DNA of 64,000 nucleotides from Carpediemonas membranifera BICM (GCA_019828565.1 JAHDYR010000062.1:421666-485665), one strand, 5' to 3'. Positions 2,942-41,058 are shown, numbered from the stretch's first letter. Translations and numbers: made by a program. Notes: a model not told the origin generated them from the letters alone.

Positions 2942-4278
2942 TCACCCCTGCTCGACAAACTCCTTCATCCGCAGCCCCTGCCGGTCCTCAGCGTCCATCG
3001 TCCGGCTCAGGTCAGCCTCCGTCTGACTCACCCTGATGTTCCCAGCTCCGTCCTCAGCCATGTCGATGTCCGCCTGGAGGTCGCACTCCTGGGGCTTCGG
3101 CATCACTGCCAGACCCACGCCGGGAGCGGGGGCGAGGCTGTGGAGTTGCTCGTGAATCTTTTGGTAAATCTTTTCGAGATCGCGTTTTGAGTTCAGATTC
3201 TGTTGGTTATTCTTGACTAGATTCAGGCTGTAGTCAGGCGCGTAGTACTCATAGAAGCGGTGGTGGGGCACCTCCTCGGGCAGACTGGAGCCCACGCATA
3301 AAGCAGTCTCATAAGCCCAGCAGCGGGCGACGTTTCTGAGCGTGTAGCCGCCCCCGCCGAGCACCATGAGCGGCAGGCCGAGGGACTTGACGAAATCCAC
3401 GCACTCGCCATGTCCGCCGATGGTCAGGTTGAAGCAACCGAGCCTGTCGTTCGCGAGGGAGTCGGCACCGCACTGAAGCACGATGGCGCCGGGCCTGAAG
3501 TGCTCCATGACGTCTCTGATGACGGCCTTGAACAGCGTGGTGTAGCTTTCGTCGTCCATGCCGTCGTTGAGCGGCACGTTCATTGCGTACCCGCTTCCGC
3601 CCTCCGCGCCGACATCGCCCAAATCACCCGTGCCCGGGAAGAAGGAGTTGCCGTGCTTGTGGAAGGAGACTGTCATGACCCTGTCCGTGGTGTAGAAGGC
3701 CTCTTCTACGCCGTCGCCGTGGTGGATGTCGATGTCGATGTAGAGCACACGAGCATGGACCTTGAGAAGCTCCAGGATGCCCAGTACAATGTCATTAGCG
3801 TAGCAGAATCCACTGGCCTCGTTCCTCTTGGCGTGGTGCATGCCGCCCATCCAATTGACGGCAATGTCGGAGTGCCCTGCATTAAGATGGGCCGCGCCAG
3901 TCACACTGCCGCCACAGGACCGCTGGCAGTACGGGAAGATGCCTACGAACGGCGGACAGTCCTCGCCGATGGAGAAGTTGTTGGTCTCCTCCTGCGTGAT
4001 GGTAGCGTCACTCGGGGACACCTGTTGCAGGAAAGCAATGTCTGCATGAGTGAAAAGAGGATGTACAAACAATCATCAGTGTGGAACTTGGTCATCTCAA
4101 TGTTGGATAGAAGCCTGGGATTGTAAATAGACATGCGCTCTTGGAGACCGTAGTTGAGGATTAATTCCCACGTCATGTTGGCGCGGAACGGCTTCATGGC
4201 ATGCTCGGGCCCGAAGTAGTACTGTCCGAAGTCTGGATCAAGAAAATACGACACAGAGCGCTTGTTACCAGGACTCAT
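2942..4278 (-). CDS. RPD3: Class I histone deacetylase (RPD3/HDAC1-3), join(4071..4278,2942..4041)
   Basis: HAMKP, GEDCP.F, GGMHHAK...[34 protein letters not shown]. Removing the 29-nt intron 4042..4070 (GTTTG...CAG) restores HTDDYIAFL. Confidence 0.95.
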
Positions 4279-26877: not shown

Positions 26878-27901
26878 GCCACAAAGTTGGGCGCGTCATC
26901 CTTCGCCGTTGATAGAGAAGGGAAGGGTAGACCGCTGTCACCCTCGTCGGCACCGGCCAACAGAGCGAGCTGCCAGCGCGACCAGGCCGCCGGATTCATT
27001 TGCGGAGATCATCTCTCTGACACCCGACCAGCCTTCAGCCCAGGAGCTGACGCACGTTTATGGCTCCCTGCAATGCGCAAGTCAGAAGTGTTACCAGCAA
27101 CATCACCTTATCCATCCAATATCACATTTATCTTAAACCAGCCAGGCCCCAAGCATGCCGGCCTTCTTCTCAATCGCCACAAAGTTGGGCGCGTCATCCT
27201 TCGCCGTTGATAGAGAAGGGAAGGGTAGACCGCTGTCACCCTCGTCGGCACCGGCCAACAGAGCGAGCTGCCAGCGCGACCAGGCCGCCGGATTCATTTG
27301 CGGAGATCATCTCTCTGACACCCGACCAGCCTTCAGCCCAGGAGCTGACGCACGTTTATGGCTCCCTGCAATGCGCAAGTCAGAAGTGTTACCAGCAACA
27401 TCACCTTATCCATCCAATATCACATTTATCTTAAACCAGCCAGGCCCCAAGCATGCCGGCCTTCTTCTCAATCGCCACAAAGTTGGGCGCGTCATCCTTC
27501 GCCGTTGATAGAGAAGGGAAGGGTAGACCGCTGTCACCCTCGTCGGCACCGGCCAACAGAGCGAGCTGCCAGCGCGACCAGGCCGCCGGATTCATTTGCG
27601 GAGATCATCTCTCTGACACCCGACCAGCCTTCAGCCCAGGAGCTGACGCACGTTTATGGCTCCCTGCAATGCGCAAGTCAGAAGTGTTACCAGCAACATC
27701 ACCTTATCCATCCAATATCACATTTATCTTAAACCAGCCAGGCCCCAAGCATGCCGGCCTTCTTCTCAATCGCCACAAAGTTGGGCGCGTCATCCTTCGC
27801 CGTTGATAGAGAAGGGAAGGGTAGACCGCTGTCACCCTCGTCGGCACCGGCCAACAGAGCGAGCTGCCAGCGCGACCAGGCCGCCGGATTCATTTGCGGA
27901 G
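26878..27901. repeat. 298-bp tandem satellite, block 1 (~3.4 units)
   Basis: Apparently identical units; ORF-track entries recur at 27060/27358/27656 (period 298). Confidence 0.97.
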
Positions 27902-28377
27902 TCAGTTCACCAATGATTTCAGCAAAGTGGAAACACTTCGATCATGGATGGACAAGGACCAACAGGCCTGGCCTATATGGATAGGGCAGTGCCCCATGGA
28001 GCTCAGAAGGAGCGGCCTTGGCCTCCTGTCTGAACATTCAAGGGTTGCTATCAGGGCATACCGCTGGGCGCGAGTGGGAGCTCCACGCCCATACCAAGGA
28101 ATCAAAGTGTCTTCATGGAACGTATGTTTACAAGGAAAAGGAAAACAACCGTCGAGGGCCAGTGCTAGCACCGGCGGCTACATGGTTTTGTCAAGACCAC
28201 AAGGAAGGAAGGGCAGCACAAAAAGGGAAACAGGGGCCGTCGATAGGGGCTAAAAGGAGACTACGAACAAAGCAACAACAACTACACAGAAAGGCCCCGC
28301 TACTCAGAAAAGGGCGACGCATTTTTAGGACCGCGCCTTTTTGGAAAGAATGGCCTATATAGTACGGAGCATGGACA

Positions 28378-29157
28378 ATGGGAGAAACTGGAAGGCCTGG
28401 ACGGAGACCTCACCCGGATATGTACATGTGGCCCGACTTTCGGACCCAAAAATTCCGACCCAGTTTATGGACTAGGAAAAGGGGAGAAATTTTGCACTCA
28501 ACAATGCAGGTAGAAATACCGACAAGGATCAGGGATTCCACGCAGAAGCAGTGGGAGGACATCAGGGAACTACTGGACAGCTTCCTCGCTGAAAGGAACG
28601 ATTCAAGGACCCTACTTCTTCGTAGAACAGGCAAGTTTACAGGAAAGTCGCTCAATGCGAACTCCAAAGGACGCAAGGAAGTAATCATGAACGCCAGACG
28701 CATCCTCTTCGCAACCGGCGTCACTGACAACAAGGACATCATCCTCAGGAACCCATGCGGCATCCACGGCCTCCGCGACCTTTTCTACATGCTCACAGAG
28801 GCGCTCAACCCCAGAGACGAGGAAGCAAAGGACATGGCACAGGCACTGGAGCCCAAGACGCTGAAAGCGGGCTTCACTGGCATGGCAAGATGGCCATCTG
28901 AGAAGGACATCGAGACGGCGATCCTCAAGCCGAAGGAAGATGGGCCCATCGAATGGGATGTAGACAGGGACAGCGTCAAGAAGGCCGAAGGGTCGTTCAT
29001 ACTGGTATCAGGGGCTCATGGAGACGAGGCCGTAGAAGGCGTGCCTTACGACAAGGTATGGGATCCGGCAAACCAAGGCCCGGTCACCAGAGTGGCCTAC
29101 GAGCAAGAGGACGGCAAGTACAGGGTCATCCTAGAGCTAAGCGACACGTCAGCATGG
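28378..29157 (+). CDS. ORF1 of the LINE-like element, 5' part (interrupted by Gypsy; continues in frame at 34084)
   Basis: Removing 29158..34083 joins ...DTSAW to SISRFMEE... in frame. Confidence 0.75.
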
Positions 29158-29223
29158 TGTGCCCTTAACCTGCGGAATTCGTAAAACAGTCTTTATCATA
29201 TTTCTGGGCCCTAGCACGGCACA
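29158..29223 (+). repeat. 5' LTR (66 bp)
   Basis: tgtgcc...ggcaca terminal inverted repeat; identical to 34014..34079. Confidence 0.95.
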
Positions 29224-29244
29224 GTATCGATACTGCCGATTCAA

Positions 29245-32200
29245 ATGAAGACTCTTACAATTGACACCCCGTTCGCCGTCGAGAGAGCACTCCAGGAGTA
29301 CCTCTCGGCGATGCCCCACGAGAAGAATCCAATTTCGTTCTTTAGGGCATTGTCCCCCGAGACAACAGAAAAACTTCGCGCCCAGTGGCGCCCAACCACT
29401 CTTTTTGACACTTTCGAGGACCTACAACGAACCGTTCTGTCCGATTCCGATGCTCGCCGCGCGGCGAACACAAGCTCTGCCAGTACTGCGGCACGAGCCC
29501 GTACAACGAAGACCGACAACCTCACCGCCATCTGGGTAGAGGAGGTACAGAAGACCATAAGAAAAGCCACGTTCGCCGCCTGTAGCGAGTGTGCAGCTAA
29601 GCACAAGGACCCCACCCTGACAGCAATGACCCGGGAGTGCCTTGAAGCTCAACATCCCCAGATACTGACTGACTGCGGCAAGAAGGCCTGCGACTTCTTC
29701 ACCCAGCTGACCGACGACCACGACATCGCAAACGTCGAGACAGTCGCACGGCCTGGCAACCTGACCGGCCCGGACGGCGAAGACGTCTCGGTGGCGTTCG
29801 TGTACATGCCCCCAGTGCCCGAGGAGACCAAGCCCGCCCCCTCCTCGGCGGCTTGGCCAGTCTTCGATGGCGGGGACGTCTACGCTTTCCTCGCCAAGGA
29901 GGCGACCTCCATCGCCCCCTACCTCGCATATACCCTCTTGACTAGTACGGACCCGGGCGCAAGAGCCAAGCTCCTCAAGGCAAAGCTCGACAACATCACG
30001 CTATACGGTCCGGAGCCCCGGCACCGAACGGCCGTCGAGAAGGCACGTAAGCTCATAAGCGCCCTCAACCCAGACATCAAGGACGTCCCCACCATCTCCG
30101 CAAAACTGCTCGAGCGGATCATTCGGGACTTCGCCACTAGAGGTTTCTCCAAAGAAGCCGAGGATGTATACGAAGAAGAGATTGAGGACTACTCCGACAA
30201 GATCAGCGAACTTCTCGACAAACTACGCGACTTGGATGTTGATCACGACGAGAACATCATTATCCCATGGCGTGCCTTCAGACTCGCCAGCCCACAAGCC
30301 GACAACAACGAGCAGGCGTCGGGCACTTCAGGCAGGAAGCCGCTCGCTCGCAGGCTCGATGGTCGCGATCCGTTCCAGCAGTTTAGGGACAAGACCAAGT
30401 TCCGCATGCCTCCTTCCCACACGAGATACTGCACACAGCATGGCTGGAACCCGCACCACGAGACGAAGGACTGCAGGTTCCTCATCAGACGGGAGGCTTA
30501 CAAGGCCCAAGAACGACAGCCACAGACCGAGAAGCGTCAGGAACGCAGACCCGAAGAGCGGCAAAAGCAGCCCGGCAACCGCGCACGCCCTGTGGCGCCC
30601 ACCAGTCACCAACAGTCGGATCGCCGGGCCGGCCGCATGGACCTCCGCCCCTCGTCTACCCTGAAGAACCCGCGCCGCGTCGATGAGGTGTTTGACGCGG
30701 ATGAAGCGTCTCATTCGGAGTTGGAGAACGAAGTCTACGAGATCGAGGACATCATACTCGACAAGGACCCGGTGAAGGTCCCGGCTGTTATCAACGGCCA
30801 GCACATGAACGTCAAGTTCGACATCGGCGCTTGCACGTCGGTCATATCAGCCCCTGCCCTCGCAGCGATCCCCGACGTGACCCTGATACCGACCTCAGTC
30901 GAACTTCTCGGCGCTGGGGACGATATCATCTCCACTGGCAAAGCCGCCAAGGTCTCGCTGACCCTCCCCAGTGTCGACGGAAAGACCGTGACCACCACTG
31001 CGTTGCTCATGGTCACGAAGGGCCAGAGGAAGAAGGTCCTCATTGGACGCGATTTGCTCCGCCGCCTCGGCTTCCTGCTGAACGACCGGCTACTAATACC
31101 GTCCGCTGACCCGATCGATGACGACGACGGCCTGGGACAGCACCCCTACCTCGACTCGACAACAGAAGAAGTCGACCCCGAGGAAGAGTGGCGCAAGGTT
31201 AAGCTGCCGACCGAAGAGAACCCGGAGCTGGCTGCCTGGCTGACCGACTTCCTTCGCGAGCGCAAGGCCGTGTTTGGCCCTCTACCTCCGGATGGCAGCA
31301 GGATGCCGCCACACGAGATCGTCGTCGATCCAAGCCGCCCTACACCCAGGGCCCGACCCAGGCCGTTGAAGGGTGATCCGGGAAACTCAGCCCTCGCGGA
31401 GATCGACAAGATGCTCAACCAGGGCGTGATCCGAGAGAGTCAAAGTCCGCACTCTAGCCCGCACGTCATGGCAAAGAAGAAGAGCGGCGAAGACCGCTTC
31501 TGCATCGCTTACAACGTCTTGAACAACGCCACCATCGACGACCTGTACCCCCACGCCGGACATCCGATCGTTTGTACACGAGGCGAGCGGATGCTCCGTG
31601 TTCGCGGCGCTCGACCTGCGCAGCGGATACTGGCAGCAGAACATGGCAACCGATAGCATCCCGCTCACCGCATTCACCGTCCCGGGCGGGCATTACGAGT
31701 TCTTACGTACACCATTCGGGCTGAAGAACGCCCCAGCAAAGTTCCAGCGAGCCATGGACGAGATGCTCGCTGGTATCGACGGTTCGAGAGCCTATATCGA
31801 CGATATCTTTGCGTACGCCCGCTCCATTCAGGATTTCAAGTCGACCCTCACCCAGATCTTCGACCAGTTGGAAGCTTACGATATCAAACTCCGCGCCGAC
31901 AAGTGTGCCATTGGCATGAAGGAGGTTGAAGTCTGTGGGTTTATAGTCAACGAGTCTGGCAGGTCGGTTTCCCCCTCACGTATCGCAGCCATCCAGGACC
32001 TCACACCCCCAACGACGACAACGGAGCTGCGCCGCACGCTAGGCAAGTTCAACTATCTGTCAAACTATATCCCACACCTCGCCCACGCATCAGCCCCGCT
32101 CAACGCCCTCCTAAAGGGATCGCCGCAGAAGTCGGCCCCCCCTCGATTGGACTGCCACTGAGGACGAAGCATTCGCCCGTATGAAGACCCTAGTAGCCGA

Positions 32201-33987
32201 GCACACCGCCCTCGCGCTCCCAGACCTGAGTGCAAAGTGGACTCTCGAGACCGACGCATCGTCGACCGCCATCGGTGGTGTACTGTGGCAGGGCGAGGGT
32301 GACGAGAAGGTCCCACTCGCCTTCTACAGCAAGACCCTCGACGAGACCCAGCAACGGTGGTCCACGGTGGAACAGGAGCTTTTCGCCATTGTCTATTGTG
32401 TAACGCGACCAGAGTTTTCCCCCCTCTTCAAGCTGAAGCCGTTCGAGCTTCGCACGGACCATCGTAATCTGATATGGCTACTCAGGAAGACAGACGAGGA
32501 CGGCACTAAGAAACTGACACGATGGCGACTCACCATGACAGAGTATCCGTATAACGTCACACACATAGCTGGAGCGCAGAACCTCGTAGCCGACGCACTG
32601 TCGCGGCCATCATCTCAGCGCAAGAACGAGGTGCGCTGCTCGATCGACCACGTCACCACGACGCGCCAAGAGCAGATCACCAGGGCGCACGCCGGTGCAC
32701 AGGGCCACGTCGGCCCAGACCAGACCATCGCCAATCTGAAGCAGTCCGGTGTCACGTGGCCAGGCATGTCGGATGACGTCCGCGCGACCTTACGCCAGTG
32801 TCCAATCTGTCGCAAGACAAAGCCAGCCCGCAAGGAGCCGATCAAGTGGCACTCTACTCAGCGCATCCGCCCATTCGAGACGGTGCAGGTGGACACCATT
32901 GGCCCTTTGCCCGAGAGAGACGGTCTCAAGTACGTCATCACGGTGGTGGACGTGTTCTCGAAGTTCACCATATTGAAGCCCACACGGTCAACGAGCGCAG
33001 CCGAGGCAGCAGCCGCATTGCTGGAGATCTGGGCGACTTTCGGCGTCCCGGCCGAGCTCCAGTCTGACCAAGGTACACAGTTCAGGAATGCCCTAGTCGA
33101 GGAGATGAACGAGCGACTGAGCCTCAAGCACCGGTTCAGTACGGCATATCATCCGGCCAGCAACGGCGTAGTCGAACGCCTGAATGGTACCGTCATGAGA
33201 CGCTTAAGAGCGCTCCTGCTGGACGCCCGCGACGACAACTGGCCCGCATACCTGCCCATCGCCCAGCACGTTATCAACGCCACCCGCCACTCCACCACAG
33301 GCCTCAGCCCCTTCGAACTATTGTTCGGACGCAAGTCAACCATGCTGCGCGTCGCGCCCGACGCCCTGACCAACGCAACCCAGATGCTCGAGCCGGGCTC
33401 AGTCGAAGCCGACGACATCGTCCGCTTCCAGGCCCACGTCACGTCGCTCCAACAACTTGCCGCGATCAAGGTCAAAGCCTACGAGGTAAACAAGGCTGCA
33501 GGCTCCTCGGACAGCACACGGGCCTGGGAGAACGAAACCTACGTCCTGCTGAGATACCCGGGCAAGCCGCCGACCAAGCTACTCCCGCCTCTGCGCGGAC
33601 CGCTCCGCATGGAGGGGGAAGGGCGATCACCCCAACACCTACAAGGTGATGGATCTCGTGTCGAAGTGCGTCGCCACAGTCCACGCAGACCGACTCGTCA
33701 CATTCCACGCCGACGGCCTCACGGAGAAGGAGCTCGAGGAAATTGCCGCCTACGAGCAAGATGAACAACCCGTGGAGGCAGTCGTAGGCCACCGTAAGAA
33801 GAAGAACGGCTCTCTGGAGCTACTGATCCGTTGGGAAGGCCTCACCCCCGACGAGGACTCATACATCCCCTATAATCGCTACTACGACCAGCTCGAGGCT
33901 ATCGACAGTTATCTCGAGCTCAATCCTGGTCTCAAGCCGATGTTTGAGAGTGCTAAGAAGAAGTTCCGCAGGAGCGGTCGCCGTTAG
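29245..33987 (+). CDS. Gag-Pol polyprotein (~1580 aa after correcting three +1 homopolymer indels near 31550, 32140 and 33615)
   Basis: CxxH-x5-H-x4-C knuckle, protease FDIGA, RT LDLRSGYWQ/PFGLKNAP/YIDD, RNase H TDAS..ELFA..TDH..DALSR, integrase HHCC + D,D,E, GPY-like RGPL, chromodomain VEAVVGHR...LLIRWEG..PDEDSYIP. Confidence 0.93.
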
Positions 33988-34013
33988 TCATGCGACACGC
34001 ATTGGGAGGGAAG

Positions 34014-34079
34014 TGTGCCCTTAACCTGCGGAATTCGTAAAACAGTCTTTATCATATTTCTGGGCCCTAGCACGGCACA
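34014..34079 (+). repeat. 3' LTR (66 bp)
   Basis: Identical to the 5' LTR; preceded by the PPT and followed by TSD atgg. Confidence 0.95.
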
Positions 34080-34083
34080 ATGG

Positions 34084-36803
34084 TCCATCAGCCGCTTCAT
34101 GGAGGAGGCTAGGGACATCCTCAGGCTTCAGGCACCGGAGGCCCCGGCCATATGGCAGGCAGCATGGAACAAGTCAGGGATCTACCTGAAGGGCAGAACC
34201 AATATCCTGGGCGAAGGGGAGGAGACCCCCCTTAGCAACGAGCCGCCGTTCCGGAAGGTGAGGCTGGAAGTGCTCAAGGCCACCTCGGTCCGCAGCAATA
34301 GGGACGAACATGCCGATCTGGACAGGTCGTCCGCTAGCACGGTCATCGACGGAGACGAGGAGCAACATGTCAAGGACAAGGAGGAACGACGCCAGCAGGC
34401 CACCATGCCCGGCAGAAGAAGCCTCGACGACAGCCTCCTGGAAGTGAACAAGGACATGGTCGGGGCCAACCAAGGCAAGATCGACCAGGACGAGGAGGTC
34501 GACTCAAACAAGGTCAGCAGCCAGCCGCCGAGGATGCCTAGAAAGGACAAGGAGAAACGACTGGTGATCGGAGCCATCGACTTCGAGTGCGCAGACCCTG
34601 GCGTCAAGAAGGCAGGGATCCCTGCCATCCCGGTTGAGGGCGGGATCGTACTCTTTGACCTCAGCACTGGGGACATTCTTGGACACGGGCATGGCCTGTA
34701 TTACCAGGACATACCGGCAGCAAGCATGGACCAAGCGAGGTACACGGCATGGGCAGTGACGGGGCTGCCGCCGGCCACCTTCGTGGAGGTCGGGACGGGG
34801 CGGCCGCCGATCGAGTATGAGAAGCACATACATACTTTCAGGGACTGGGCCAACCGCCTGGCGGCTCAGCTGGCAAGGATCGAAAGGTCGGAGGGTTGGA
34901 AGATAATCATGTATGCAAGGGGGATGGAAAGCTTCCTCCTCACGAACCCCACAAATGGACTGGAGCAAGGAACCAGGGAATTCTTCCAAGCTAGGCTGGT
35001 GGACGAGAAGAAGCTACCAGAGATCCTGGAGAACAACGGCAAGGGAGGAGGCTGGCCAAAACCTCAGGGACAACCTCGACAAGGCCAACTACCTGGAAGC
35101 AGTAACAACATGGTCAAATGGATGGCAGAACAGGAGCGAGCCCAAGGGAGTCTGTCCGTACCACAGACACACCGCGGGTTGCTACCACTGTGGGTTGGCG
35201 GATACAGTAGTCTTCACAGCCAGGATCAGGGCCCTATGCAAGGAGAGGATGAGCACCCCAGACGTCTACCACTACATGGGTAAGGCACTCGACAAGACCA
35301 TGGAAGCAGTCGGGAAGGCGGAGCCGGGCATGGATATCATGGGAGGCCCGGAATTCGCGACAAGGAGGGACACCTTTGAGATCTTCGGCACGTACCCGAT
35401 CGGGGACGCAAGGGACGTCAGCAGGGAAGTCGGCGACAGGATCCTCGTAGTCCCGGACAACGGACACCGCTTCGGCATCGGCTTCGGGTTCGGGGAGGTC
35501 TGTTGGGCATGAAGGGCATCTTACTGGCCCCCCTCACAATCATGGACAACGAAGGTGTACTGGAGAGAAGCCCGCTATGGACCATCATGGAAAGAGCCAC
35601 GGCTAACCAGCTCCGCATGGTACGCGTCAGGAAGGGCCTAGGGGCAGCAAGGGAGGAGGACATCATAACCATGGCCATGCTATACGAGTGGTGGCCCTCG
35701 AAGGAGGCTACGGCTCATCAAGGAGTCTGGGGCTGCGACAACCTAGCAGAGAGCCTCAGGGACTATGAGAAGGTCATAGTCAACGTCAAGGCCCCCAGGA
35801 ACAGGGGGTAGGATCACCCTAGGGGCGAGCTTCATCCCGAGAGACTGGGGCATGGTCAGGGTCAGCGAGGCTGGGACCATCCTAAGCCGCATGCGCAAGG
35901 AAGGGGCCAGACTAGTCTCGGCAGCTATCCCGGACGAGCCCAGAGCCAACACAGTCAATGTCCCAGGCATCACGTATGTCCCCACCATCGACGGAAAGTC
36001 CGAACAGCCATACCAAAGTAGGTTCTTCGACAACGGCCTGGAGGAAAAAGGCGAGGCGGATTAGCACCAGGATGGTGGGCAGGCACTTCGGCCAGGACGC
36101 GGATCAAGGACATCACGACCAGCATGGAGACAGGGAAGAGGACAGAAGGGTAGGACACGGAGCCGGCGGTAGAGCTGGTGTCAGAGCTGACGACAGAACC
36201 GGCGACAGAGCTGGTAACATGAACAGGACCTCGGATCGTAACCACGGAGGAGACGACAGGGAGAGACAGGACAACACGGGAACGCAGATGAGAGGCTCGT
36301 TCAGCGGGAACACCTGGGCCGGTAGAGGCTCAGAGGGAGGCATGGACAACAGCAAGGATCACTCTTCCTCCACGACGCTCAAGCGCAAGGAGGGCAGCAC
36401 GAGTAGGATCATGGACTCGGACAGCGGAAAGAGAAGCAGGTACGAAGAGGACACGGACTGGGAGTCTGGAAGCAGACAGGCAACCGGCATGGACTCGGAG
36501 AAGCTGCGGCTCCGAAAGCAGTTGGCAGAGGCGCAACAAGAGATCTCAGCGCTCAAGGCTGCCCGACTCATGCAAGAGCAAGGCCACGGAAGGTTGGTGC
36601 TCTCCGGCGTCGCGACTAAGCCCAGCAAGGAGAAGCCCACGATCCCCCGGCACAAGCACAAGAAGGCTAAGAAGGCCAAGCAGATCTCACCCATGGACCT
36701 GATGACCCAGTTCATCACGGTAATGCAGAGTCTACAAGGACAGCAAGTGAGTCAGGCCGAGGACAGCTGCAGCGGCAGTGGGGAGTCCACGGAGGAGGAG
36801 TAA
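34084..36803 (+). CDS. ORF1 3' part: Maelstrom (MAEL)/DEDDh domain (~34561..35210), then low-complexity and coiled-coil C-terminus; four frameshifts
   Basis: AIDFEC, IPVEGGIVLFDLSTG..H....DIP, TGLP, IMYARG, VCPYH...HCGLAD correspond to the MAEL ECHC motif plus DEDDh residues. Three of the four frame breaks lie in G or A runs. Confidence 0.75.
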
Positions 36804-36862
36804 GGACATGGTAAAGCAGTATTCTTTCAAGGAACAAGCAACATTTTCTTTATAATTCACAA

Positions 36863-36960
36863 GCCCTGGCTCCCACCCAGGGCCCGGCATTAGCTGAAAT
36901 GCACTGCCGGTAGGCTGTAGCGGCAGCCAAAGGGGGGTCACGTCATATCGTCCCCCTCCT
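36863..36960 (+). promoter_or_regulatory. Four consecutive GC-rich hairpins in the ORF1-ORF2 spacer
   Basis: gccctgg/ccagggc, ccggca/tgccgg, ggctg/cagcc, aggggg/ccccct. Function unknown. Confidence 0.5.
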
Positions 36961-37134
36961 AAGTACCCTGCCCGAAGAATGGAAGGTCACCAGGAGGTAA
37001 CAAGGTTGGCCTGACAAGGGTCACCGAGACCGGCATCTAGGCCCCTTGTTAGGACAAGGATAGCAGGAGAGGAGCGGGAAGCTGGGGCTCCCAAATTCTG
37101 GGAATTCGCAGGATAAGGAACCAGGACAAAGGCA

Positions 37135-38580
37135 ATGGTAACCTACAAGATACTTAGTCTGAACACAGAGGGACACATAGGAAGAGGAAAGGACTTCACG
37201 GCGTCTATGGCAACGGCGATTCAGCTAAGGTTGAAGGACATAGAGGCAGTACTCATACAAGAGACATGGAGAACGGCGAATACGAGGGTTCATTGCTTCA
37301 TGGACCTTGACTACGCACTAGCAGGGAGGGAGACGGAAGAGGACCTGGTCTTAGCCAACGAAAAACGAAAGGCGGATGTCAAAAGTCAGCACCGCATCAA
37401 CCGACAACTAGGCATAGCAGGCAATGACGAACCTGCGCCAAGATGGAAGGGAACAAGGGAAGGCATCGGCACGATAGTGAGCCCACACGCAACTGCAAAG
37501 TGGGACATCGGCATAACGGACAGCCTATCGGGAAGAGTGCAAGCCAGCATAATGAGAACCGGCAGGGACATACTAGTCATCAACGTGTATGGCCCTCCAT
37601 CCGGCCACAGCAAGCAGGAGAAGGATGGATTCAGGGACACTATACAGAAGATCATGGACATGAAAGGGAGCATGGAGGCCATAATTATGGGAGACTGGAA
37701 CATCGACCCAGGCCAGATGGAAAGATCCACCCGGTGGAAGGATATGATGGAGAAGCACAGGCTCAAAGCCATCATACCCAAGTCTGGGACGCTCACATCA
37801 GGAACATCAACCCCGGACTTTGCAGTGACAACACCAGGAATCCAGGGGGCGGAGATTGAGGTGGTAGAGTCTCAGAAGGTCGGGGTATGGGGCTCAGCAC
37901 ACAATGGAATCACACTAGCATGGAAGGAACAACGGTACTATGGCAGAAGTGAGCGAGACGTGGCTCTGGCCATACCCGAGGTGCACACCTGGCCCATGAA
38001 AAAGAAGGAGGGGCCAGTCACAGTCTCAAAGCTGAACAGGATCAAGAGCTCGGACCAATGGGAAGAGACTATAAGAGCATGCATGGGCGACCCAGTGAAC
38101 AACAGGGGAGCAAAGGCAAGGGACAAAGTGTTCGGGAACGGAGTGTGGAGCGAACTCCAGCGAACCCCATGGACAGAAATAGGCAACAGGACCAGGAAGG
38201 AAAGGATGAAAGAGGAGCTGGAGAAATACTGGGGGAGAGCGCAGGGCCAAATGGATGGCCGACCTCAGCAGAAGTGCAAAAGGGGGTATAGGGCCTCAAG
38301 GGCCTCAGTGGAAGCTGCCATCAGAAGGTGGTGGTGTGATAACCAATACAAGGGAATGCCGGAGAGCCTCCTCAAGGACGGAGTGATAACCACGGACAAG
38401 GCGGCCATCAGCGAGATCCTCTTGCAACAGTATGCTAGAGTCAGCAGAGGCAGGGAACCCACCTGGAAGACATGGAGGGGCAGGGACGGAAATGAGTTCA
38501 AGGAAAGCGAGGTCAAAGCCGCAATCACGGCAGGACTACGGGAACTGGCAAAGGTTTACAACAGCTTCAAGGTGGAATAG
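37135..38580 (+). CDS. ORF2: APE-type (EEP) endonuclease + linker, lacking the reverse transcriptase domain
   Basis: SLNTEG, LIQETW, INVYGP, MGDWN, PDF and SAH motifs; linker LLKDGVITTDK..I; F..SEVKAAI (usual pre-RT motif) followed shortly by a stop. Confidence 0.88.
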   Translation: MVTYKILSLNTEGHIGRGKDFTASMATAIQLRLKDIEAVLIQETWRTANTRVHCFMDLDYALAGRETEEDLVLANEKRKADVKSQHRINRQLGIAGNDEPAPRWKGTREGIGTIVSPHATAKWDIGITDSLSGRVQASIMRTGRDILVINVYGPPSGHSKQEKDGFRDTIQKIMDMKGSMEAIIMGDWNIDPGQMERSTRWKDMMEKHRLKAIIPKSGTLTSGTSTPDFAVTTPGIQGAEIEVVESQKVGVWGSAHNGITLAWKEQRYYGRSERDVALAIPEVHTWPMKKKEGPVTVSKLNRIKSSDQWEETIRACMGDPVNNRGAKARDKVFGNGVWSELQRTPWTEIGNRTRKERMKEELEKYWGRAQGQMDGRPQQKCKRGYRASRASVEAAIRRWWCDNQYKGMPESLLKDGVITTDKAAISEILLQQYARVSRGREPTWKTWRGRDGNEFKESEVKAAITAGLRELAKVYNSFKVE

Positions 38581-39497
38581 AAGCATGTCATGAATCCCTG
38601 ACTCCAGGACCGGGAAGGGATGGACAAGGAATCAGCCATGGACCACCCTCGCTGGGTGCTAAGCTCCTGGGATCAGTGAGGAAAGGCCCCACGTATCCCG
38701 GTAGCCAGGAACCAAAGCAAGGGAAGGAACGACTGCAAGGAAAGAACAGGAAGGACAGACCAGAAATAAGAAAGAAAGGACATGCGACAAGGACAGAGCA
38801 AGGATAAGGTCAAGGAAATCCATATTCATATGGTTGCACCACTCGTTGGGACCCCAAGGAAACTGCAGGGACTGGCCACGGGGGTCGGAGGGGCACAGGT
38901 GCCCCTGCCGCCCTTGTTAACGACATGGGAAACCAAGGACATGTAGTGCAAGCGAAATGTTGTAAGGGGTAACAGGACAACCAGGCCTAGTGCCTGGGGG
39001 TACACCACCCATGCCCTGACCCACGCCACCTAACCGGGGTAGACAGCATGGACTTAGTCACTTTCCCCGCCTTCGGGTAGGCTTCTTAACAGAGTCGAGG
39101 GGGCATGGAATTGGGGAACCGGACAGACGAGAGGGTGCCGTGGCTGAACGGCTCTACAAGGACTGCAGGGAAGCAAGGAGTGTCATAGTCAAGGTTCTGC
39201 AGGACGATCCTGCCTGTCAACGCCCCGAGGACAGACCCCCAGGCTCCCCGGATAGTTGCCGGACCTTCAGGGAGACAGGAAAGCATATTTGCACGGAGAT
39301 GGCCGCAGGGCTTCTGGGGCGATTGGAATCGGCTTTCCGCGGAGACAGTAGCACCGAAAGCCCAAGGCAAACGCTGCTGACCAGTTTGCCACGGGAAATA
39401 GGCAGTACCCCGGGGCACTCAGCTCCAAGACAACGGGAAACAAGCTCAGTCCGGGGTCAGAATCCAAGCACCATAAATTTCTTTCTTTCTTTCTTTC

Positions 39498-40553
39498 ATT
39501 CATTTGCGGAGATCATCTCTCTGACACCCGACCAGCCTTCAGCCCAGGAGCTGACGCACGTTTATGGCTCCCTGCAATGCGCAAGTCAGAAGTGTTACCA
39601 GCAACATCACCTTATCCATCCAATATCACATTTATCTTAAACCAGCCAGGCCCCAAGCATGCCGGCCTTCTTCTCAATCGCCACAAAGTTGGGCGCGTCA
39701 TCCTTCGCCGTTGATAGAGAAGGGAAGGGTAGACCGCTGTCACCCTCGTCGGCACCGGCCAACAGAGCGAGCTGCCAGCGCGACCAGGCCGCCGGATTCA
39801 TTTGCGGAGATCATCTCTCTGACACCCGACCAGCCTTCAGCCCAGGAGCTGACGCACGTTTATGGCTCCCTGCAATGCGCAAGTCAGAAGTGTTACCAGC
39901 AACATCACCTTATCCATCCAATATCACATTTATCTTAAACCAGCCAGGCCCCAAGCATGCCGGCCTTCTTCTCAATCGCCACAAAGTTGGGCGCGTCATC
40001 CTTCGCCGTTGATAGAGAAGGGAAGGGTAGACCGCTGTCACCCTCGTCGGCACCGGCCAACAGAGCGAGCTGCCAGCGCGACCAGGCCGCCGGATTCATT
40101 TGCGGAGATCATCTCTCTGACACCCGACCAGCCTTCAGCCCAGGAGCTGACGCACGTTTATGGCTCCCTGCAATGCGCAAGTCAGAAGTGTTACCAGCAA
40201 CATCACCTTATCCATCCAATATCACATTTATCTTAAACCAGCCAGGCCCCAAGCATGCCGGCCTTCTTCTCAATCGCCACAAAGTTGGGCGCGTCATCCT
40301 TCGCCGTTGATAGAGAAGGGAAGGGTAGACCGCTGTCACCCTCGTCGGCACCGGCCAACAGAGCGAGCTGCCAGCGCGACCAGGCCGCCGGATTCATTTG
40401 CGGAGATCATCTCTCTGACACCCGACCAGCCTTCAGCCCAGGAGCTGACGCACGTTTATGGCTCCCTGCAATGCGCAAGTCAGAAGTGTTACCAGCAACA
40501 TCACCTTATCCATCCAATATCACATTTATCTTAAACCAGCCAGGCCCCAAGCA
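39498..40553. repeat. 298-bp tandem satellite, block 2 (~3.5 units)
   Basis: Same unit and orientation as block 1; resumes in register after the TSD. Confidence 0.97.
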
Positions 40554-40609
40554 CATGCAGTCAATTCTGGTACCTTTTCTGGAACAAATGGTTCCAGAAT
40601 TGGTTCCAG
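40554..40609 (+). repeat. Left TIR (56 bp)
   Basis: catgcagtcaattctggtaccttttctggaacaaatggttccagaattggttccag; contains iterated ttctgg(a/t)ac motifs. Confidence 0.95.
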
Positions 40610-41058
40610 TTTCTTTGATCGATTTTGATCGAATCTCGCGGATCAGTTCTAAAGTTGGTGTGCGTACTCTATAGACCTAGCTTCACCTCTGGACACATTA
40701 ATACTGCATGCAGATGTCTCAATAAATATTTATGATCGGTTTTCGTATCGTCAGTGCAGGATAAGGTCGCATGACTTGGCCAAAGTCGCTCTTCAGAACT
40801 CGATCGTCTGACACATACAAACGCTAAAAGTGGTTGGCAAAGATGCATTAGACCTTGTATATGACGTGTATAGACAAAATTTCGGGTGTTGCACTGTCAC
40901 CTTCCAAAGGTGACCACGCAAAAAGTCTTGAAAGTGAACCTTCAACATCAAACTAGTGCTAAAGCAACGGTATTGTGCGTCATTTCCTCCAAAACGCCCC
41001 CCTTTACGTGATATTGTACGCTCAATATTTGATGAGTTCAAAATGGTGTGACAGTACG

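Follow-up and report, generated by a model that had tools for sequence, protein, structure and literature searches.

The window, that is, the whole 64,000-nt stretch of Carpediemonas membranifera BICM that was analysed (JAHDYR010000062.1:421666-485665; positions are given within this stretch), contains a copy of a non-LTR (LINE) element whose first open reading frame (ORF1) is interrupted by a second retrotransposon and encodes a degraded exonuclease domain. The features are arranged as follows:

27902..39499, + strand, non-LTR (LINE) element copy with a target-site duplication (TSD) on both sides and a (TTTC)n tail, lying within a 298-nt tandem array
28378..29157, + strand, ORF1 part 1, aa 1-260, ending at the Gypsy insertion point and collinear with the 1167-aa ORF1 of copy L031
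29158..34079, + strand, nested Ty3/Gypsy chromodomain retrotransposon, which splits ORF1 after codon 260, recognised from its LTRs, TSD, and Pfam matches
34084..36803, + strand, remainder of ORF1, aa 261-1167, broken by indels, placed by DNA alignment to L031 and by ORF pieces
34546..35392, + strand, predicted zinc-site DEDDh (DEEDh) exonuclease domain, ORF1 aa ~415-698, first half in frame 1 and second half in frame 2
37135..38580, + strand, ORF2, 481 aa, AP-endonuclease domain only (Pfam Exo_endo_phos_2)

The TSD-bounded element and the Gypsy insert named in a preliminary description of this DNA, which had been made from sequence inspection, were both recovered. The 12-bp TSD of the LINE copy, TCATTTGCGGAG, lies at 27890-27901 and 39500-39511, and the empty site is visible in the 298-nt array units on either side. 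The Gypsy element is delimited by identical 66-67-nt direct repeats serving as LTRs (29157-29223 and 34013-34079) and by the TSD ATGG (29154-29157 and 34080-34083); it yields Pfam matches to RT_RNaseH, rve, and Integrase_H2C2, and is separate from the exonuclease and no part of it. Apart from indels, the LINE copy is 99.7% identical to L031 in DNA alignment, with 19 substitutions in 6.7 kb. The reverse transcriptase (RT) has been deleted from its ORF2 and is found nowhere among the Pfam matches of that frame; this copy, like most others in the genome, is an internal-deletion derivative without RT, and it is non-autonomous, mutated, and internally deleted.

Every motif that the preliminary description quoted from ORF1 is present in the window, distributed over two frames: AIDFE, IPVEGG, FDL, GHGHGL, YQDIP, VTGLPP, and IMYARGME lie in frame 1 (ORF 34015-35283), and CPYH (35153-35164) and HCGLAD (35186-35203) lie in frame 2 (ORF 34913-35512). 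Relative to L031, the window ORF1 has four 1-bp frameshifts (a G gained at 35043, a T lost at 35499, a G gained at 35804, and an A gained at 36045) and an in-frame 6-bp deletion at ~34919-34923, which converts AKGVEME to ARGME and removes the two codons immediately before residue E544. The added G at 35043 places IDFE and CPYH..HCGLAD in different frames, so that the continuity of these two segments, a point singled out for checking in the preliminary description, is lost in the window copy and is found in at least 23 near-identical copies. Given the Gypsy split and the indels, the window copy is unable to make the ORF1 protein (ORF1p). Among short, low-depth contigs from independent public sequencing runs, none of them on record as RNA, one is free of the additional G at 35043, and a further two carry the T absent from the window at 35499. 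The G gained at 35043, with the break at ORF1 residue ~582, is common to at least 11 copies, including that of the window, and reflects either a subfamily or recurrent homopolymer error.

The genome of the free-living protist C. membranifera (24.2 Mb, 69 contigs) was searched for further copies, and only natural copies were analysed, no repaired or consensus sequence having been built. The count of genomic copies that the preliminary description had called for gave at least 40 for the DNA segment, all of them 98-100% identical; the whole 336-aa domain forms a single open frame in at least 23 copies of the same identity range, and a 1172-codon open frame is found in two copies (C27:65869 and C4:21974), one of which, L031, gives the 1167-aa ORF1. 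In most genomic copies ORF1 is broken, which implies that the domain was not required in cis by every copy that spread. Full-length ORF2, represented by copy L044, is 1147 aa long and carries APE and RVT_1 domains (PF03372/PF14529 plus PF00078), and its relatives are APE/RT proteins at 25-38% identity. With APE and RT in the ORF2 of full-length copies, a 12-bp TSD, a (TTTC)n tail, and no LTRs, the element is an APE-type LINE. The same domain recurs in further LINE families of the genome at approximately 87, 69, 61, 53, 48, 45, and 35% identity; the last of these families is presumably a LINE, its copy number and the length of its open frames being the sole grounds. Wherever both matches are listed, the ORF2 match lies 1.5-3 kb downstream of the domain on the same strand, as in the domain/ORF2 pairs C36:81751/84108, C56:99201/102282, C8:262304/264502, C1:93055/95253, and C6:327768/331705. 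A more distant LINE copy, L045, with 46% ORF2 identity, has neither ORF1 nor exonuclease upstream; it may simply be 5'-truncated.

When 1.84 billion representative proteins were searched exhaustively with phmmer, only 13 hits resulted: seven C. membranifera gene-model fragments and six proteins of 720-1250 aa encoded on short contigs of assembly GCA_002919055.1. Against 5.8 billion proteins, a profile search yielded nothing beyond Carpediemonas fragments, and the family is thus nearly undetectable by sequence search. In public gene models, fragments of the family carry the label of a hypothetical protein or of a splicing factor. Assembly GCA_002919055.1 represents a different organism, since its proteins are only 30-40% identical to the C. 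membranifera genome, and one of its contigs has the same layout, with an ORF1 of 1250 aa and, after it, an APE/RT ORF2 of 1177 aa. Because the domain is common to several deeply diverged LINE families and to the LINEs of a second organism, it is old within, and ancestral to, a LINE lineage. The preliminary description had instead proposed that a mobile element captured a silencing-pathway nuclease. A recent capture from a host MAEL (Maelstrom) gene was rejected on account of this spread and of the absence of a detectable host copy, PF13017 (Maelstrom) having given no match over the six-frame genome in a search run without a positive control; moreover, it is animal Maelstrom that has the piRNA-pathway role, and its relatives in protists are plain exoribonucleases (PMC4408791).

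The intact ORF1p, of ~1170 aa, comprises, in order, an N-terminal conserved region, an acidic linker, the exonuclease, a conserved block at aa ~735-860 (with the motif KGILL..PxW..WP..AN..FIPRxWG), a low-complexity stretch, and a C-terminal heptad-like segment that is alignable across families and is probably a coiled coil. LINE ORF1 proteins are RNA-binding chaperones, and some carry an esterase. The exonuclease domain is the best-conserved part of the present ORF1p, with a mean pairwise identity of 32% vs 11-19% for the other parts, and 16 of the 20 invariant columns in an alignment of eight full-length ORF1 sequences fall within it, between E527 and D635. Structure prediction gave no confident fold for the conserved block (aa 700-900; pLDDT 37), and an ESM Atlas feature search with the N-terminal part gave no usable match.

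An AlphaFold2 model of the exonuclease domain, predicted from an alignment of 13 natural sequences (A2), reached a pLDDT of 79.6 and a pTM of 0.82, and its topology, b1-b2-b3-aA-b4-aB-b5-aC (beta1 spanning model residues 7-17), follows the RNase H-like/DnaQ-like order of the DEDDh fold; by its predicted fold, the domain is a DEDDh exonuclease. Onto this model the catalytic and zinc-type residues can be placed as follows:

34579..34587, + strand, ExoI motif D-F-E in beta1, D426 (34579-81) and E428 (34585-87), kept in 9 of 9 covering rows
34636..34638, + strand, E445 in beta2, candidate Glu of an ECHC zinc site, kept in 9 of 9 covering rows
34927..34929, + strand, E544 at the ExoII position, Glu instead of Asp, at the start of helix aB after beta4, an invariant column
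35153..35203, + strand, CPYHRHTAGCYHCGLAD, with C619, H622 (CxxH), and C631 of zinc type and H630 and D635 forming the ExoIII H-x4-D, invariant columns

The acidic and zinc-type positions D426, E428, E445, E544, D569, C619, H622, C631, and D635 are kept without exception in the alignment rows that cover them, H630 in all rows save a 183-aa fragment (P0009) that has Leu there, and H463 of the HGL motif in beta3 in eight of nine rows, the EHHCHC signature of MAEL including two further conserved His residues; in the full-length ORF1 alignment, C619, P620, H622, H630, C631, L633, and D635 are invariant columns. In the model, D569 follows beta5, C619-P-Y-H622 lies in the loop ahead of the last core helix, and H630-C631-G-L-A-D635 opens that helix. 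The domain thus has the DEDDh catalytic set, with the ExoI D-x-E, an acidic residue at ExoII, and the ExoIII H-x4-D; the DxE and HxxxxD that the preliminary description had matched to DEDD residues are D426/E428 and H630-x4-D635, and the residues concerned are kept across families. On sequence and predicted secondary structure, the domain also has the residues of a MAEL-type ECHC set, namely a Glu in beta2 and, in the loop ahead of the final catalytic helix, a CxxH and another Cys, and E445, C619, H622, and C631 may on these grounds form a single zinc site. Both the catalytic and the zinc-type residues hold across LINE families that are 20-50% identical, the second organism included.

Family assignment is less straightforward than the fold. 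The preliminary description had read the segment as a Maelstrom nuclease domain encoded by a retroelement and had proposed comparison with the Pfam Maelstrom model and with MAEL structures; the DEDDh fold, the placement of the E..CxxH..C set as in MAEL, and the location in a non-LTR ORF1 bear this reading out in part, and the Pfam comparison does not, as PF13017 matched none of the window pieces, the intact ORF1 (E<=10), the 13 family members, or the genome. PF00929 (RNase_T) likewise gave no match in the genome, the intact ORF1, or the 13 members, so that the absence of a Pfam match does not discriminate MAEL from a generic DEDDh enzyme; for the intact ORF1 and the 13 members, no other Pfam family matched at E<=10, and neither phmmer nor a profile search returned anything relevant from PDB sequences. 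Membership is proposed from fold and motif geometry rather than from sequence statistics, and the working resemblance is strong. In structural comparison, Foldseek gave E values of ~1e-3 to TREX1, 3'hExo, Orn, and MAEL, and in an unbiased search of 48,161 chains Maelstrom came first, with 3'hExo/ERI-1 tied at the top; among ESM Atlas clusters, two Maelstrom clusters scored a TM by query of 0.52 with 214-216 residues aligned, and RNase_T clusters scored 0.46-0.48. MAEL is thus the nominal best and the longest structural match, and the predicted fold favours Maelstrom only slightly over other DEDDh families. An ESM Atlas feature search with the exonuclease part returned generic oligoribonuclease-like clusters, and the BFVD matches were all generic DEDDh exonucleases of phages and giant viruses, arenavirus NP (nucleoprotein) being absent from the best 50.

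Building on the observed fold, residue conservation, LINE context, and age of the domain within the lineage, we consider it probable, with appreciable room for doubt, that the window segment is a degraded copy of a Maelstrom/arenavirus-NP-like zinc-DEDDh (DEEDh) exonuclease residing in the ORF1p of a LINE lineage, and that this exonuclease is active and acts on 3' ends within the element's ribonucleoprotein (RNP). The most serious competitor, itself unlikely, is a generic DEDDh exonuclease of the ERI1, RNase T, or TREX kind that gained its Cys and His residues independently, such that the likeness to Maelstrom would be convergent or superficial. Against this stand the beta2 Glu, the CxxH, and the Cys beside the catalytic His, whose positions match those in MAEL and Lassa NP and whose spacing equals that of MAEL, and the structural alignments, which are longest for MAEL (195-216 residues vs 160-196). 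In addition, published surveys find the zinc site in no other cellular DnaQ-like exonuclease, the ECHC site having been reported among DnaQ-like enzymes only in MAEL and arenaviral ExoN, which are placed as sister branches (Cruz-Gonzalez et al., PMC7968707).

Under the favoured reading, the ORF1p domain would be a Mg/Mn-dependent, zinc-stabilised 3'-5' exonuclease, most likely active. It would work on 3' ends inside the element's own RNP, where its likeliest task would be to trim the element RNA or the nicked target DNA and thereby allow reverse transcription to be primed; clearing away dsRNA or small RNAs on which host Argonaute silencing draws ranks second. The latter task, taken as the main one, would make the ORF1p exonuclease a counter-defence enzyme that degrades dsRNA or small guide RNAs and so blunts Argonaute-based silencing, an idea about what the domain does, not about what it is, and one that is compatible with the main explanation. 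ERI-1 removes siRNAs, and the arenavirus NP exonuclease removes dsRNA. Two host Piwi-domain (Argonaute-type) genes were found, 3'hExo/ERI-1 shares the top structural match, and functional analogues with the zinc site include an immune-evasion dsRNA exonuclease (PMC7968707, PMC6693484); the analogy is nevertheless based on fold only, and we regard counter-defence as improbable.

Very improbable, by our estimate, is a catalytically dead RNA-binding module like that of animal Maelstrom, serving only to coat the element RNA. RNA binding is the usual role of LINE ORF1 proteins, and the second acidic position is occupied here by Glu rather than Asp. The MAEL domains of animals bind single-stranded RNA and leave it uncut (PMC4408791); however, animal MAEL has lost the DEDD residues, whereas the five catalytic positions are kept here across families that are 20-30% identical, and active nidovirus ExoN has either Glu or Asp at the second acidic position (PMC6693484). 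The conserved catalytic set thus makes a purely RNA-binding role unlikely. A fortuitous match of motifs in a decayed pseudogene devoid of a functional domain, which the interrupted and frameshifted window copy might suggest, has practically no likelihood and is refuted by the at least 23 open-frame copies, the confident model, and the invariant residue columns in a part of ORF1 that is more conserved than any other, both between families and in the second organism.

The zinc-site pattern is rare, being otherwise reported only for Maelstrom, an anti-transposon host factor in animals, and for the arenavirus nucleoprotein, which coats RNA and destroys dsRNA; with the LINE domain, mobile elements become a third branch to consider when asking where the exonucleases of Maelstrom and arenaviruses originated. 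A more speculative proposal, to which we attach little weight, is that the ORF1 exonuclease is a transposon-encoded suppressor of Argonaute silencing, or that a retroelement lineage stood near the source of the zinc-DEDDh exonuclease later used to opposite ends by Maelstrom hosts and arenaviruses. In either version, if true, one enzyme type would be found on both sides of the genome-parasite conflict. The best-conserved part of the transposon's own RNA-coating protein also provides a concrete, expressible predicted enzyme with which to ask what 3'-end trimming gains a retroelement.

Maelstrom is among the closest known systems. The zinc ligands of Bombyx MAEL are E137 (in beta2), C290, H293, and C302, and R306 stands where the last Asp of the DEDD set would be (Chen et al. 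2015, PMC4408791); the C-x2-H-x8-C spacing of the LINE domain (12 residues from first to last Cys) is identical to that of C290/H293/C302, E445 lies in beta2 like E137, and D635, at C+4, takes the position of R306. The addition of a Cys-His-Cys set distinguished the MAEL ancestor from DnaQ-H (Zhang et al. 2008, PMC2628886), and an amoeba MAEL protein that has both residue sets is an active exoribonuclease (PMC4408791). With the Entamoeba histolytica MAEL exoribonuclease EHI_192630, the LINE domain shares the DnaQ-H fold, the DEDDh residues, and the E..CxxH..C set; it differs from protist MAEL of this type in having no detectable sequence similarity, Glu for Asp at the second acidic position, and ~20 extra residues between beta2 and CxxH, and in being embedded in a ~1170-aa retrotransposon ORF1 protein, whereas protist MAEL is a host gene. 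Lassa NP has the same H-C-x3-D string (H528/C529/D533; PMC4408791) and likewise combines DEDDh and ECHC residues, but its CxxH-to-Cys distance is 23 residues rather than 12. The exonuclease of arenavirus NP (Lassa, LCMV) is C-terminal, in contrast to the central position of the domain in ORF1, and shows no sequence-level match to it; preference for dsRNA and service in immune evasion are features of the viral enzyme. The CxxH..C zinc site is missing from the PF00929 enzymes ERI-1/3'hExo, RNase T, and DnaQ epsilon, whose alignments are shorter (165-182 residues).

Full-text literature searches found no description of a LINE ORF1 with a Maelstrom-like, DEDDh, or other 3'-5' exonuclease, in agreement with the statement in the preliminary description that no LINE ORF1 with MAEL was known. 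The SGNH esterase ORF1 of CR1, RTEX, and ZfL2 likewise combines an enzyme domain with a probable coiled coil in a non-LTR ORF1, the enzyme there being an esterase and not a nuclease. As the nearest precedent, a retroelement DnaQ-like 3'-5' exonuclease with intact catalytic residues is encoded by ORF3 of the bdelloid rotifer Juno/Vesta LTR and Athena Penelope-like elements, some members of which also have a Cys-His-Cys pattern (Rodriguez et al. 2017, PMC5408684). The bdelloid enzyme is RNase D-like DEDDy and occupies a separate ORF in animal LTR and Penelope-like elements, whereas the present domain is of DEDDh type and lies within the non-LTR ORF1 of a metamonad protist; for the bdelloid DEDDy enzyme, too, a role at 3' ends has been entertained (PMC5408684).

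The LINE family represented in the window includes several internal-deletion classes, found at many loci of the C. membranifera assembly, in which ORF1 and the endonuclease are kept and the reverse transcriptase is absent (ORF2 coverage of 1-349, 1-294, 1-373 or 74-470). Every one of these classes consists of several near-identical copies, and they look like non-autonomous derivatives that have been spread in trans. The extra G at window position 35043, which breaks ORF1 at residue ~582, is common to at least 11 copies, the window copy included; it is either the mark of a frameshifted subfamily that multiplied all the same or a systematic homopolymer error in the assembly. The features that bear on the insertion, structure and relatives of this family are as follows:

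Window 26878-27889 and 39512-40691: tandem repeat array with a 298-nt unit, the target of the LINE.
Window 29158-34079: Ty3/Gypsy chromodomain element with LTRs and a target-site duplication (TSD), nested in ORF1.
L031 (intact copy) 3260-3640: second conserved ORF1 block, aa ~735-860, KGILL..PxW..WP..AN..FIPRxWG.
L046 3486-4412: ORF that encodes DDE_3 transposase and HTH domains, located between the ORF1 and the ORF2 of a copy from the 47%-identity LINE family.
L045 2836-6309, minus strand: LINE copy with an ORF2 46% identical to that of the window.

The array units on either side of the LINE are 94-100% identical, and the flanking units provide an empty-site sequence for the insertion. The nested Ty3/Gypsy element has a 4-bp TSD (ATGG) and LTRs of just 66-67 nt; because these LTRs are identical, its sequence suggests a recent insertion. 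The transposase ORF at L046 is also a nested insertion, in this case of a DNA transposon. At L045, the 3.6 kb upstream of the copy holds no ORF1-like or exonuclease sequence; the copy is either 5'-truncated or derived from a single-ORF relative.

Within ORF1, the second conserved block has three invariant residues (P800, N829 and P847), has no Pfam match and yields no confident fold prediction (pLDDT 37). A search of the whole 24-Mb eukaryotic assembly with the RNase_T model (PF00929) gave zero matches at E<=0.01, while the model scored in 11 of 14 control genomes; either intron-split genes were missed by the initial filter of the search, or classical DEDDh enzymes are scarce in this organism.

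Among public data, the 531-aa NCBI model P0004, 'Splicing factor U2AF', starts with the C-terminal half of the ORF1 exonuclease domain; the annotation behind this name is probably mistaken or chimeric. Lastly, because a 151-nt contig from a microbial-mat metagenome run (X2) is identical to the exonuclease region (window 34556-34706), the sampled mat may contain C. membranifera or a closely related organism.
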